From assembly GCF_000315625.1 (NCBI RefSeq), contig NW_005434621.1:419539-483538 (forward strand): a stretch of DNA of 64,000 bases, read 5' to 3'. The translations under genes were made by a program, and so were the position numbers. The notes beneath the pieces were generated by a model, which saw only the letters and a program-made list of their open reading frames with translations, did not search any database and was not told the DNA's origin. Below, one piece after another: positions 43,168 through 47,700 of this stretch; position 1 is the stretch's first letter, and each line of letters opens with the position of its first letter. The stretch is from Guillardia theta CCMP2712. Its lineage: Eukaryota > Protista > Cryptophyta.

Positions 43168-43304
43168 TCCCTGCCAGATCGAAAGATCGAAAGAAAAAGA
43201 AAGAAAATAAAAGCGTTTTACACAAGAGAAAGAAAAACAAAAAAAGAAAGAAAAACAAAAAAGAGAAAAAAGAAAGAAAAGTGGAAGGGGGTCAAGAAAA
43301 ATGC

Positions 43305-43517
43305 CACGTGGGTATAAAGTTTTATATACTACGAGGGTGGGTACCTATATGGGTAGTAGGTGGGGTCATATGCAGATGATACACGGGTCGTTTTGACTTC
43401 AGTATTGTTTTTGCAGGGGTGGTGGTGGTAGTCAGGAGTAGGTAGTCAATGATAATCACGGGTGGGTACTTCAATAAAGTTTTAGACACGTGGATCCACC
43501 AACATTTGCATATAAAA
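43305..43517 (+). promoter_or_regulatory. Candidate bZIP promoter: two CACGTGG boxes and TATAAAA
   Basis: CACGTG at 43305-43310 and 43487-43492, TATAAAA at 43511-43517, upstream of ATG 43804. Confidence 0.4.
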
Positions 43518-43803
43518 CGAGGAGCACGGAACGATGGGCAGGGCAGACGGTCGGGAGGAGGGAGGAAGAGGGATAGGAGGAGAGACTAGAGGACTAGATG
43601 GAAGAAGAGAGAGGAAGAGAGATAGGAAGGAGACTTGAAGACTAGATGGAAAAAGTATTGGAATTGAGTGATCCTCCCTCCCTCCCTGACTCTCTTTCCC
43701 TCTTCCCTCTCCATCCACCCTACAAGTGAGGAAGAAACCTGTTTGTTTGTATTTTCCCTCTCGTATCCGGTTTATCTTCTCACTTTTAGTCATCAGGAGT
43801 TCT

Positions 43804-44729
43804 ATGAAGAGACCGCATGACCCCTCCGTGAACATCGAACAGGAGCTTCAGGACTTGTCAGAGCTTCAGCAGCAGCATGCAGATGAGGAAGAGGTCCCAG
43901 CAGAGTTGAAGCAGCGGGTCAGAGTGCTGAAGAACAGGCTTTCTGCGAAGAAGTCGAGGGAGCAAGCAAGAGAGTATGTCAAGAACCTCGAGGCCAAACT
44001 CGCAGTCGTCTCAACTGAGTCACAGATCCTCGCACATCGCCTCGCTACGCTCGAGGCAGAGAACGCCCAGCTAAGAGCCTCTCGAACGTTTCATGACTGC
44101 CCGAGCATGGAAGCAGGGAGGTTCCACATGCCATTTCCGGCGAGCCTCAGCTTTGAAGTTGGAGGAGAGAAGAAGAGAACGATCAACGAGCCTGCAGTGC
44201 TCTCACAAACATCCCTGCAGTTGGATGCCCTTCTTCTCCTCCTCTCCACGGCATGGGCTTCTCTCCTTCACGGCTCGTCTCCATCGCAGAGGCCGCTGGT
44301 GCTCATGGCTGCCTGGGCCTTGTCCTGCATCCGCTGCTGGGCGAGCATCCCTGCCATGACTGCTCCTCCTTCGGGCTCAAGGCAGTCCCTCTTGAAGCTG
44401 GTTGCTCAGGCTTGGCGTTGCCTCCCTGGCAGGCGCAGCACCAAAGGCACGCGATGGCGAGGGATGCAGCGGAGGCGGCAGCTACTATTTCGGCTGAGGA
44501 TGCTGTTGAGCAAGATATGACAGCTGCGGACGTAGACGAAATCTTGCAGTGCCAATTGAGAGTCAAACAAGAAGAGGAAGACAGAGGAAGACGGAGGGGG
44601 CATGAAGAAGTTGGGGTGGAGGATAGAGAAGGAGAGCAAACATGTGCGAGTGATGGAGGAGCGTTCAGTCTCGGTCATTCTGACTCCTGCATAGAGGCAT
44701 CTGAGTTCCTGGAGCGCTTCCTCGAGTGA
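43804..44729 (+). CDS. bZIP transcription factor, XBP1/HAC1/bZIP60-like; unspliced ORF ends at 44520 (238 aa), predicted spliced ORF ends at 44729 (300 aa)
   Basis: Basic region RVLKNRLSAKKSREQAREYV plus leucine zipper. The EPAVL motif is followed by a hydrophobic segment, and an overlapping open frame runs to 44729. Confidence 0.9.
44161..44242 (+). other. IRE1-type unconventional intron structure with a 23-nt intron at 44195-44217
   Basis: Hairpin GAGC-CUGCAGU-GCUC (44188-44202), hairpin CAUCC-CUGCAGUU-GGAUG (44210-44227), basal stem GAGAAGAAG (44167-44175) / CUUCUUCUC (44230-44238). Confidence 0.85.
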
Positions 44730-44784
44730 CCTTTGCTCCTCTTATTGTACAAAAGAATAAAGAATGGCATGATGGTCCCGCCCC

Positions 44785-47700
44785 TTACTTGCCTTCGCCC
44801 CGTCCCTTGTGTCTTCCTATCCACCGCTGGAAGGCAGGGTTTTGATAGAACAACTGAAACCACCCGCCGCGGTTCTCATCCTGTCCCACCTGAAGCAAAT
44901 CAATCCGAGGGCTTGAAGAGGAGGCCATCAAGAGGAGGCCATCAAGAGGAGGACATCAAGAGGAGGACATCAAGAGGAGGGAGGTCAGCAGAAGGTCTTG
45001 CCTGTCGTTCCTCCTCATCTCGAAGGTCAAGGATCGGCTGCCACCAGGGGTCCACGCGCTCGACAAACTCAGCCTACGGGGCATCTTAGCACCTCCGCGG
45101 ACTAAGACGCTTCCTCCACCAGTGCGTCACTCCCACATGCTGCAGCGTCATGAAACTCGCGGGCAAGCGCGTTCGTCTTGACAACAGAGTCGCTGTAGTT
45201 CCTCACTTGAAGCCCCTCCATGCTCGACGCGCGTGACAGGGCCACGTACGCCTGCCCTTCAGCAAAGCAGCCTGCGAGATCGACACAGACCTGAGGAGAG
45301 GTGAGAAGGAGAGACAGGTAGGGAGGAGGCACTTGGTCTAGAGTTTGACCCTGACTCTTGTGGATCGTGATAGCCCAGGCAAGCTTGAGGGGAATCTAGG
45401 AGGAAGTCAAAGCCAAGCAGCTGAGAGGGTCGGCACCTGAAATCTGCAGCATCGGCCGGTGAGGAAGACGTCGACTTCGAAGGCGACCGGCAGGCACGTG
45501 TGGCGGCAACCGTTGAGAAACTTGACAACCGGGCAATTGACTTCCCTCCACTTGGTCTGGAGCGCCTGAGAGAGACTAAGCGGGACAGAGGAAGAGGGCG
45601 ACTGAACCTGCAGCTGCATGTTGATGGTGGCGACCTCGTCCAAGTAGACCTCTTGCTCCTCCGCACTTATCCTCGAGGTTTGAGAAGCTTCTCAGGTTAA
45701 CGTCAGAGCTCTCGCCCTCGGGGGGGGCATCAGACGCTACCGAGCTGCTGCTTCACTTCCTCCAATCGTCTTCTTATCTCATTCGACGCATCAACGGCGC
45801 TCACAAAGTCGACAACAACCCCACGACTTCCGTTGACAAGTCGCTTGCTTAGAACGTTCTTGGTCAGCATGACCTGCGCGCCTTTCTTGAGGTGGAGGGT
45901 CTTGGGAACCAGACAGGAAGAGAAGAACTGATTCTGCCACAGCTTCCTCATCGCAGCGCTGCTGCTCATTCCCCCGCACCTCAACGGCTCGACCTTGCCG
46001 GCATCAGCCCACAACAACCTCAGCGGCGAATTACCGAGTCGTCGGCATCATACTTGAAGCTCTGATCAGGCAGCATGTCAAGCCTGCAGACGTTCTCACG
46101 GTCAACGTTTCGGTTGGTGGAGTAGAGGATCGTCGCTTCGATCCCATCCTGCTAGGCCTGTCAACGATGCCCATCTGAGCACGTGAGAGTACCTGACAAT
46201 TGAGGGGTCTCGAGCAGCTCTCGATGAAGCAGCGAGTGCAGTCGTCGATGGTCCCTCGTCTCAGCTTGCCGAGGACGTCAACCATCCGCTGATCCTTCTG
46301 CCTGCGACACCTAGAGCGTGAGAGGACTCGCTTCCATCGCCAAATTACCGAAACACATGCTGCAGCTCCACGGCAGCAAAGTTAGCTTCTCGCCAGCAGG
46401 CTGACTGAAACACAAGAGCCTCGCAATCTTCCACCACCACCGGAATGTTCAGGTCAACATTCTCTGAGCTGCTATGGCATGAACAGCTCTCAGATCCATC
46501 CCTCTCTCTTACCTTCGCAGCACGGGCGGGCACTTGTTACGGAGCTTAGCGCCGTTCCTGGTGAAGCTGCAGAGCTGGTAGAAGTCACCTGCTAGTCTCT
46601 CAGCTCCTGTCGCAGTGAGTCTCACTCGCCTGAGAAGATCAGCTGGAGGCCACCGAAGACTCTCTGGGTGTCTCCTCGAATTCTGCGAACCACCTGGTCG
46701 AGCCAGTCGAGAAAAGCAGGCTCGATCATGCTGACCTTCAACGCGGTCAGTCTCACAGACAAGACGAGGGGGCAGGACCTCATCGATGATGAGGACTTGC
46801 GCTCTTCTCCACTGCTTTTTGTTCTTCCAGCACTTCTCCAAGTCATATACGTTGGTAGGGATACCACAGCCAGCAAAGGAATGAAGCGTTTGGCCTTCAC
46901 AGAGAATCGACGCAACTCCTGTGGCTGCTGTAGGCACTACGGCATTCCTGCCATAAAGTCTCCGCAGCACCTTGATAAGTCTCCGCAACAAAAAAGTCTT
47001 TCCTGTGCCTCCCATCCCCGTGAAGAAGACATTTCGACCCTGTCGACACAAGTCGAGCACGAGCTTCTGCTGAGGGTCGAGGTCGCTCACGTCCACGTCG
47101 TCTGTGGTTGGCGACACCAGAATGACTTCCGCTCTCTTTTCATCTCGCGAGTATTGAGCCAGGTAGTGCCCCCCCTCCCTCTCCTTCCAGCGTTGGCACC
47201 TCGAGGCAGGAATCTCACACACGCAGCACTGAGAACCAGTCAGGTGGGGTAGCAGATGAAACAAGGACTTACATAACAGTTGTCACAAAACTGAGCACTA
47301 CCGAACTGATGGATCGCACAATGTTCTCTTGCATGAGGAAGGCTGACGCCAGCGAAGTCTCCTTTCATTCCAGTCACGATCAAGTCGTCTTCGATAATCT
47401 CGCCCTCTCTCGTTGTCATCCCCCACTCGCCCAGTTTGTCAGAGTGGGGACTGGAATCAAGAATCACACATTCATCGTCGTCATCGGATGTCCAACTTCC
47501 CCTGCCAATTTCCTCCATCCTCGCTTCCTGTTGCTCCACCCTGCCCAATTTCCTTTTTCCAAGTTCTCTCTCCAAAGCTTCAGCTCCACTTTTTCCCTCG
47601 CCGTCGCGATTGGAGGAAGATCCTGGTTCCTCTTTATGCTGACCACCACCCCTATCTGAGCCGTGAGCAGCTTCGTCTAGAATGCAAGATGCTCCCGTGA

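Follow-up and report, generated by a model that had tools for sequence, protein, structure and literature searches.

In this study, we propose that the bZIP gene at positions 43804-44729 on the forward strand of the window (the whole stretch of 64,000 nucleotides of Guillardia theta DNA that was analyzed) is very likely the cryptophyte counterpart of XBP1, HAC1 and bZIP60, and that its mRNA carries an IRE1-type intron of 23 nt; the splicing itself has not been observed. Our data establish the RNA element and show that it is conserved and covaries, that both reading frames are under selection, that the unspliced mRNA is expressed and that the enzyme genes are present. We regard the case as a known mechanism in a new lineage, i.e., an extension of the IRE1-bZIP switch to cryptophytes and not a new mechanism. 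In the genome, the phycoerythrin alpha-chain family (PF02972) is represented by more than 20 nuclear loci, which supports that the organism is a cryptophyte.

The bZIP gene and its two predicted products

The sequence reveals a gene without conventional introns that begins with a start codon at 43804. Its coding features are the following:

43804..44520, + strand: unspliced open reading frame (bZIP-u), 238 aa by translation, stop codon at 44518-44520
43903..44079, + strand: bZIP basic region and leucine zipper, residues 33-92, matched by PF00170 and PF07716
44218..44729, + strand: predicted second exon in the +2 frame, a 169-codon tail ending in the acidic motif ...SDSCIEASEFLERFLE

The Pfam bZIP_1 match at residues 33-92 has an E-value of 1e-8, and the nearest solved bZIP in a PDB look-up is CREB (E 1e-5). 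Look-ups in the PDB and the ESM Atlas with the bZIP of the window returned generic bZIP matches only. At the protein level, orthology to XBP1, HAC1 or bZIP60 remains unresolved, as the deep forks in a tree of the bZIP halves are without resolution; for the same reason, this tree gives no answer as to whether the window gene and its paralogue on contig C35 (see below) define old clades.

In bZIP-u, the N-terminal bZIP domain is followed by a hydrophobic, Arg-rich tail, whose hydropathy peaks lie at residues 137-155 and 164-182 and whose end is rich in Arg. Twin hairpins are located about 35 codons 3' of the bZIP domain, and past these hairpins the unspliced frame reads ...EPAVLSQTSLQLDALLLLLSTAWASLL... 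Translation of the form lacking 23 nt (bZIP-s) yields 300 aa with a stop codon at 44727-44729, and reads ...EPAVGCPSSPP... across the junction. Excision of the 23 nt thus amounts to a swap of the C-terminus, from a 238-aa protein with a hydrophobic tail to a 300-aa protein with an acidic tail, and the same holds for the relatives described below.

A twin-hairpin RNA element downstream of the bZIP domain

The predicted splice sites are embedded in a compact RNA element with the following parts (^ marks a predicted cut):

44188..44202, + strand: hairpin 1 (5' splice site), GAGC[CUG^CAGU]GCUC, predicted cut after 44194
44210..44227, + strand: hairpin 2 (3' splice site), CAUCC[CUG^CAGUU]GGAUG, predicted cut after 44217
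44195..44217, + strand: predicted IRE1-type intron, 23 nt between the cuts after G44194 and G44217
44161..44175, + strand: basal (closing) stem, 5' strand, purine-rich, from the minimum-energy fold
44230..44244, + strand: basal stem, 3' strand, pyrimidine-rich, from the fold, flank permutation and covariation

Hairpin 1 consists of a GAGC/GCUC stem (44188-44191 with 44199-44202) and a 7-nt loop, CUGCAGU; hairpin 2 of a CAUCC/GGAUG stem (44210-44214 with 44223-44227) and an 8-nt loop, CUGCAGUU. The CxGxxG motif is present in both of these adjacent loops. Both hairpins are enclosed by the basal stem, which continues outward from a core of 44167-44175 paired with 44230-44238. Folding of 44159-44247 gives, at minimum energy, a three-helix shape that includes the basal stem (-30.3 kcal/mol, z -2.3). 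None of the 23-nt registers at the site has GT...AG or GC...AG ends. A first-pass annotation, made from the sequence alone, had described the hairpins, their loops with the CNG^CNG consensus and the 23-nt spacing at 44195-44217, a 9-bp extendable basal stem (44167-44175 with 44230-44238), a hydrophobic unspliced frame stopping at 44520 and a spliced frame open to 44729, and had found no 23-nt register with GT-AG or GC-AG ends. Every one of these claims held when the sequence was re-examined, folded and translated.

Exactly one pair of twin CNGCNG hairpins occurs in the window. In simulated 64-kb sequences (first-order Markov), the mean is 0.28 pairs, with at least one pair in 47 of 200 simulations. 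Since the motif is thus expected in about a quarter of such windows, the case rests on context and comparison and not on the motif alone. What goes beyond chance is the position of the site right after the bZIP domain, the logic of the frames and the conservation in relatives.

RF04247, the Rfam family of the non-canonical bZIP intron of Hac1/Xbp1, is the top Rfam match on the window element (21.8 bits) and likewise in nine relatives; all ten sequences are aligned hairpin to hairpin, with scores of 21.8-33.1 bits. Every score falls short of the gathering threshold of 41 bits, and the element is therefore a divergent relative of this family and not a formal member. A scan of the whole genome with RF04247 gave no match at E <= 10, the model being too weak at 87 Mb.

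Conservation in relatives and in a paralogue of the same genome

Besides the window element, 17 further distinct elements were identified, 16 in transcriptome or metagenome contigs and one in a paralogue of the same genome. A protein search yielded eight homologues, mostly from marine-protist transcriptomes (L012-L015 and L017-L020), which were chosen by protein homology and leave the RNA unconstrained. L012, L013, L014, L015, L017, L018 and L019 carry twin hairpins with cut sites exactly 23 nt apart, and the divergent L020 has 20 nt between the cuts, resulting in the same frame shift. Among the ten elements obtained by protein homology, the distance is accordingly 23 nt in nine and 20 nt in one; over all 18 elements it is exactly 23 nt in 17, L020 being the exception. 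A scan with a degenerate pattern of the element added 13 environmental contigs, of which eight are distinct; genomic contigs of up to 21.7 kb are among them. The 96%-identical contig L037 shows 39 differences, none of which lies within 44161-44244; these are too few for a codon-position test.

When the bZIP half was searched against the window's own genome, a family of bZIP paralogues emerged. The paralogue on C35 carries its own 23-nt intron (C35:625958-625980), flanked by the hairpins GAGU[CUGCGGC]ACUC and UAUCC[CUGCUGUU]GGAUG. Unspliced, this paralogue encodes 215 aa with a hydrophobic tail; the predicted spliced product has 314 aa and ends in ...EDDLLDLLSCDSSCSPEDGLDLF. The element is absent from six other bZIP paralogues of the same genome, also when these are scanned with a covariance model. 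This model was built from 16 elements with the C35 paralogue and L020 left out, and it recovers both, at 41.8 and 29.9 bits, respectively. Genome-wide, it finds only two loci, the window gene and the C35 paralogue. Marginal matches on C12 and C46 were rejected as chance because they are not in bZIP genes.

Covariation of the stems

Hairpin 1 is 97% paired across the 18 sequences. Its inner pair is C-G in 16, U-A in one and U-G in one, including a C-G to U-A double change in the C35 paralogue, and an A-C mismatch is found in two relatives (L017 and L019). Hairpin 2 is 100% paired across the 18 sequences, and its second pair is A-U in ten, G-C in seven and G-U in one. The C, G and G of the loop are the same in 17 of the 18 elements, but the N positions differ (U, C or A at position 2; A, G or U at position 5 in the paralogue). 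The 3' loop has 8 nt instead of the canonical 7 in 17 of 18 sequences, a small but conserved departure; in L020 it is shorter and lacks the consensus. As the pattern scan fixed most hairpin letters for eight sequences, invariance in those is partly an artefact of selection. That scan put no constraint on the covarying pair or the basal stem.

The strongest evidence for selection on RNA structure is the complementarity of the basal stem across clades. In L018, L020, L022, L023 and L039 the basal stems are unlike in sequence and encode different residues, yet they remain complementary (e.g., AGAACCAC/GUGGUUCU in L018, ACAGUCGCAC/GUGCGACUGU in L020 and GAGCAAG..UGACCGCG/CGCGGUCA..CUUGCUC in L022). 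The closing stem is present in the minimum-energy folds of all relatives. In a test that needs no alignment, the duplex energies of the 5' flanks with their own 3' flanks sum to -220.2 kcal/mol, compared to -150.1 +/- 14.1 kcal/mol with permuted flanks, and none of 20,000 permutations reached the observed value. In a model-made alignment, double changes occur in 12 of the 15 pairs of the basal helix; its covariation score is 0.248 versus 0.172 when shuffled, a value reached by none of 500 shuffles and by no slid control. Counting pairs in a fixed register gives 61% for the basal stem, which is an underestimate because the register shifts between clades; the alignment-free test is the better one.

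Both reading frames are under selection

Of the three frames that follow the element, the +2 frame stays open longest in each of the 17 sequences compared. It extends over 99-205 codons (at least 136 in all but L023), versus 5-113 codons for the third frame. An acidic-hydrophobic end is found in 13 of the 14 complete cases, with motifs such as FLERFLE, DFLEEVLGAL, WETLDVELCGL, YPFESELGL, FDEVMW and DGLDLF; in the exception, L023, an indel swaps the frames. The last 78 nt of the +2 frame, a stretch located past the unspliced stop, differ between the window and L012 at 15 sites, distributed 2/1/12 over the first, second and third codon positions, with 24 of 26 residues unchanged; the subsequent 3' UTR diverges. 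This codon-position pattern shows that the +2 frame is under purifying selection beyond the unspliced stop. It must therefore be translated, which requires a change of frame after the zipper and before the tail. Conservation also extends to the unspliced frame: SLQLD followed by 16-20 hydrophobic residues is present in all sequences, together with an Arg-rich end, and one clade shares the motif LRRAGLLQC.AHS.

Transcripts retain the 23 nt

RNA contigs and tag reads delimit the transcript as follows:

43540..44774, + strand: approximate mRNA, from the RNA contigs of three studies and the loose poly(A) ends of 3'-tag reads

The 5' ends of the contigs lie at 43538-43559, TATAAAA is found at 43511-43517, AATAAA at about 44757, and poly(A) follows after about 44774. 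Over 43550-44892 the contigs of the three studies are colinear with the window without a single difference and keep the 23 nt. The same contigs skip 44893-45004, the ends of which fit a GC-AG intron of a convergent minus-strand transcript; the runs behind the contigs are therefore RNA. Because the poly(A) site lies 45 nt beyond the stop of the second frame, just after the AATAAA, the entire second frame is located inside the mRNA. The gene is thus transcribed, and the unspliced mRNA is dominant in unstressed cells.

The spliced molecule has not been seen. The 23 nt are retained throughout, in the contigs of the three RNA studies, in nine homologous transcript contigs and in one ENA contig, the transcript contigs originating from at least ten organisms or samples. 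The sole raw RNA run consists of 60-nt 3' tags that do not cover 44195-44217. Protein searches with the unspliced protein and with the +2-frame tail returned no bZIP fused to the +2 frame, and the only match to this tail (P0010) is an open reading frame called on an unspliced contig. This is what unstressed cultures, and assemblies that lose minor isoforms, would give, but the central step stays unproven.

IRE1 and RtcB are encoded in the genome

A complete, multi-exon IRE1 gene is located on C31 (L035, C31:306000-315999). Its exons encode, in order, a signal peptide, a PQQ-like (beta-propeller-like) lumenal region, a transmembrane segment (NVIFFSSLILFLLLAGTYI), a kinase closely resembling known IRE1s (motifs GHGSQGTIVYVGELDGRKVAVKRLL, HRDLKPGN and ISDMGFSK) and a KEN domain (PF06479) with RDLLRAIRNKKNHF and the RNase motif LRDLLRAIRNKKNHF. 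A 4-kb scaffold, C559, encodes a different kinase C-lobe, which has HPFFW at its end and continues into a KEN domain (89 bits), and at the sequence level this fragment is a second IRE1 paralogue. RtcB is encoded on C6 (263 bits) and on C98. The domain of Trl1/Rnl1-type ligases (PF09511) has no match in the genome, but control genomes are equally silent.

The first-pass annotation had inferred an IRE1-bZIP cytoplasmic splicing pathway and named ways to check it. Conservation of the hairpins, the 23-nt spacing and the second frame, and covariation in relatives, came out in favour. Of the enzymes it named, IRE1 (kinase plus KEN) and RtcB were found, and for Trl1 the PF09511 search is uninformative. 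Its search for the junction in RNA data met only unspliced contigs and 3'-tag reads that stop short of the site, which speak neither for nor against. The inference is thus supported, with the spliced junction itself not shown and all assembled transcripts unspliced.

Alternative explanations

The hairpins might be IRE1 sites that serve decay only (RIDD-like), or are cleaved without productive ligation, so that the second frame is never joined. In favour of this view, the spliced form was seen neither in contigs nor in protein searches, and some fungi, e.g., S. pombe, use IRE1 solely for mRNA decay (PMC3470409). Yet it leaves unexplained the exact spacing of 23 nt in 17 of 18 elements, a +2 frame that is open over 136-205 codons in nearly all elements, and the purifying selection (12 of 15 differences at third positions) together with the conserved acidic C-terminus, and we consider it very unlikely. 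Equally improbable in our judgement is that the +2 (i.e., -1) frame is reached by programmed -1 ribosomal frameshifting on structured RNA instead of by splicing. The -1 frame is indeed open from 44157 through the element and a stable structure is present at the junction of the frames. However, an in-frame X_XXY_YYZ slippery heptamer is lacking in all 18 elements, the structure surrounds the shift site instead of lying downstream of it, and frameshifting gives no role to the invariant CNG^CNG loops or to the fixed distance of 23 nt, both of which IRE1 needs.

Two further explanations can practically be ruled out. The hairpins could have arisen merely from coding constraints, and the long second frame could be an accident of composition. 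Both hairpins overlap conserved peptide motifs, with constraint from the codons for E-P-A-V and S-L-Q-L-D and from Glu/Lys-rich versus Leu-rich stretches; the purine-rich 5' and pyrimidine-rich 3' flanks of several clades cross-pair to some extent, and pairs of such motifs turn up by chance in about a quarter of 64-kb windows. Against this stand the complementarity kept by the unlike basal stems of L018, L020, L022, L023 and L039 (0 of 20,000 permutations), compensatory double changes in the stems, a second frame with a synonymous-site substitution pattern and a conserved acidic end, and the lack of the element in six other bZIP paralogues of the same genome. Alternatively, the 23 nt could be a tiny spliceosomal or otherwise constitutive intron missed by annotation. 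Very short introns are known in some protists, but GT/GC-AG ends are lacking in every 23-nt register, and the 23 nt are kept in every transcript contig and are therefore not removed constitutively. An IRE1-type intron thus remains the preferred reading.

Proposed mechanism

According to the IRE1 model, the unspliced mRNA would be translated in unstressed cells into the 238-aa protein, with a hydrophobic segment and an Arg-rich tail behind its bZIP domain. By analogy with HR2 of XBP1u and the transmembrane domain of bZIP60u, this tail may hold the protein, or its nascent chain, at the ER membrane in an inactive state. Upon ER stress, IRE1 would cut after the G of CUG^CAG in both loops, the hairpins being held by the basal stem, and an RNA ligase, for which RtcB is an available candidate, would join the exons. 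Loss of the 23 nt would shift translation to the +2 frame, replacing the hydrophobic tail by a 169-residue tail with an acidic-hydrophobic end that resembles an activation domain, and the result would be a presumably active 300-aa factor. Cleavage, ligation, dependence on stress, the role of each isoform and the activity of the enzymes on this RNA are all inferred. The C35 paralogue shares the same design, and the genome contains two IRE1 genes.

A bolder reading combines several claims: that this is the first IRE1-bZIP splicing switch outside opisthokonts and the green lineage; that the plant-like design, with 23 nt and a hydrophobic tether lost on splicing, arose no later than in the ancestor shared by Cryptista and Archaeplastida, and probably as early as the last eukaryotic common ancestor; and that two IRE1 genes and two spliced bZIP substrates form two parallel channels, possibly answering different stresses, e.g., in the ER around the complex plastid. 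Taken jointly, we hold this reading to be tentative and would lean slightly against it.

Implications

IRE1 is nearly universal in eukaryotes. To our knowledge, no spliced bZIP substrate of IRE1 has been reported outside animals, fungi and green plants or algae. The substrate is unknown in most protist lineages, and it is hence unclear whether ancestral eukaryotes already had the splicing branch or only mRNA decay. The first-pass annotation knew of no such system outside animals, fungi and the green lineage, and our own search agrees: we found no account of IRE1-dependent splicing in cryptophytes or any other lineage outside these groups in the searchable literature, a provisional result as most subscription journals are beyond its scope. 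A cross-eukaryote study (PMC4891664) covers yeast, Arabidopsis and human only. If true, an IRE1-type switch in cryptophytes would reach a fourth major branch of eukaryotes. It would bear on the age of the splicing branch of the unfolded protein response, and the conserved, covarying, canonical element in two paralogues and many environmental relatives opens this question to tests in a culturable alga with a sequenced genome. The stems, the CNG^CNG loops and the frame switch also provide a search model for other lineages. The cryptophyte plastid is kept inside the ER lumen, and ER stress signalling in these algae is therefore of particular cell-biological interest.

The standard gene model of 238 aa represents only the isoform inferred to be inactive. 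The claim that standard gene prediction misses the active isoform held, in that the predicted active 300-aa factor is absent from annotations and protein databases; its activity is inferred.

Comparison with known IRE1-bZIP systems

In plants, bZIP60 (AtbZIP60, OsbZIP50, Marchantia MpbZIP7) has a 23-nt intron, twin stem-loops with CxGxxG and a flanking stem (PMC11077094, PMC3216516), and immediately behind the site its unspliced frame codes for a hydrophobic or transmembrane segment that is lost on splicing (PMC11077094; PMC3216516). The window gene is similar in all these respects, with a 23-nt predicted intron, twin stem-loops and a flanking stem, and a hydrophobic segment that would be lost on splicing. 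It differs in the 8-nt 3' loop of its element. Whereas AtbZIP60 has an N-terminal activation domain, the window gene would gain an acidic, activation-like motif at the C-terminus, like XBP1s and HAC1s. The ligase of plants is the tRNA ligase RLG1 (PMC4891664), whereas only RtcB was found in the window genome.

Metazoan XBP1 has a 26-nt intron with CUG^CAG loops, and splicing brings a C-terminal activation domain in frame (PMC11077094). The hydrophobic HR2 of XBP1u, which is lost on splicing, brings the complex of ribosome and nascent chain to the ER (PMC11077094). Similar to XBP1, the window gene combines a bZIP domain followed by twin CUG^CAG hairpins, a hydrophobic unspliced tail, a predicted acidic gain at the C-terminus and RtcB in the genome, and RF04247 is the best Rfam match to its element, yet with a score below the threshold. 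Unlike XBP1, it has 23 instead of 26 nt and no recognizable arrest peptide of the XBP1u type, and its unspliced tail is Arg-rich and conserved only within the family of the cryptophyte gene itself.

With fungal HAC1 and Chlamydomonas CrbZIP1, the window gene shares stem-loop sites for IRE1 and a new C-terminal activation segment upon splicing, both inferred for the window gene. In HAC1 the intron reaches about 252 nt in S. cerevisiae, and base pairing between this long intron and the 5' UTR keeps the mRNA from being translated. In CrbZIP1, the donor-side CxGxxG is incomplete (PMC11077094). Compared to these two systems, the cryptophyte element is of the compact, canonical type.

Candidate IRE1 substrates and the IRE1 paralogues

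The genome encodes a second bZIP gene, on contig C35, in which a 23-nt twin-hairpin intron is predicted from sequence:

C35:625958-625980 (L039:1826-1848), predicted 23-nt twin-hairpin intron of the C35 bZIP paralogue

Its hairpins read GAGU[CUGCGGC]ACUC and then UAUCC[CUGCUGUU]ggaug, and its product would lengthen from 215 aa unspliced to a predicted 314 aa with an acidic tail after splicing. Since two bZIP genes of one genome, this paralogue and the window gene, each carry their own 23-nt element, the alga possesses two candidate IRE1 substrates. The genome also contains two IRE1 paralogues, distinct from each other, with abundant SPLLSS-type low-complexity repeats in the introns of both:

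C31:309300-314620, IRE1 paralogue 1, complete
C559:1-4011, IRE1 paralogue 2, only kinase C-lobe and KEN domain present (4-kb scaffold with many gaps)

The IRE1-type element is absent from all six members of a longer bZIP paralogue family, whose proteins (307-400 aa) share a near-identical N-terminal bZIP and an additional basic stretch, EEWRKEKRRRQNREAQRRHRERQ:

C31:574244; C2:125196; C2:131200; C80:48544; C80:310769; C31:398616, longer bZIP paralogues (L040-L045)

A divergent homologue, L020, carries an element in the context SESAVLQTS..., with hairpin 1 intact and a short loop in hairpin 2, ACGUCC[GUGCU]GGACGU:

L020:551-570, possible variant element, predicted 20-nt excision

As removal of these 20 nt still opens a frame with an acidic end, the second hairpin is perhaps a variant 3' site.

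Surroundings of the window gene

Transcript contigs of three studies skip 112 nt (44893-45004) holding a tandem GAGGAGGMCATCAA repeat. The ends are compatible with a minus-strand GC-AG intron (44890-45001), which suggests that a convergent gene extends with its 3' end into the 3' UTR of the bZIP gene. Upstream of the bZIP gene, the region at 43200-43300 and 43540-43720 contains long A/G-rich low-complexity runs; in the 5' UTR (~43545-43700) a GGGAGG-rich block is mirrored by a CCCTCC-rich block, with which it could pair.

The unspliced C-terminus

Conservation extends to the C-terminus encoded by the unspliced frame (window 44218-44517; also L039 and the homologous contigs L018 and L023), which is Arg-rich in the window gene and its homologue L012 and reads LRRAGLLQC.AHS in the group resembling the C35 paralogue. 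The frame ends ~55-85 residues beyond the hydrophobic segment. XBP1u and bZIP60u stall ribosomes at ~55-85-residue spacing; as the cryptophyte distance equals theirs, this C-terminus may, by analogy, act as an arrest or ER-targeting peptide.
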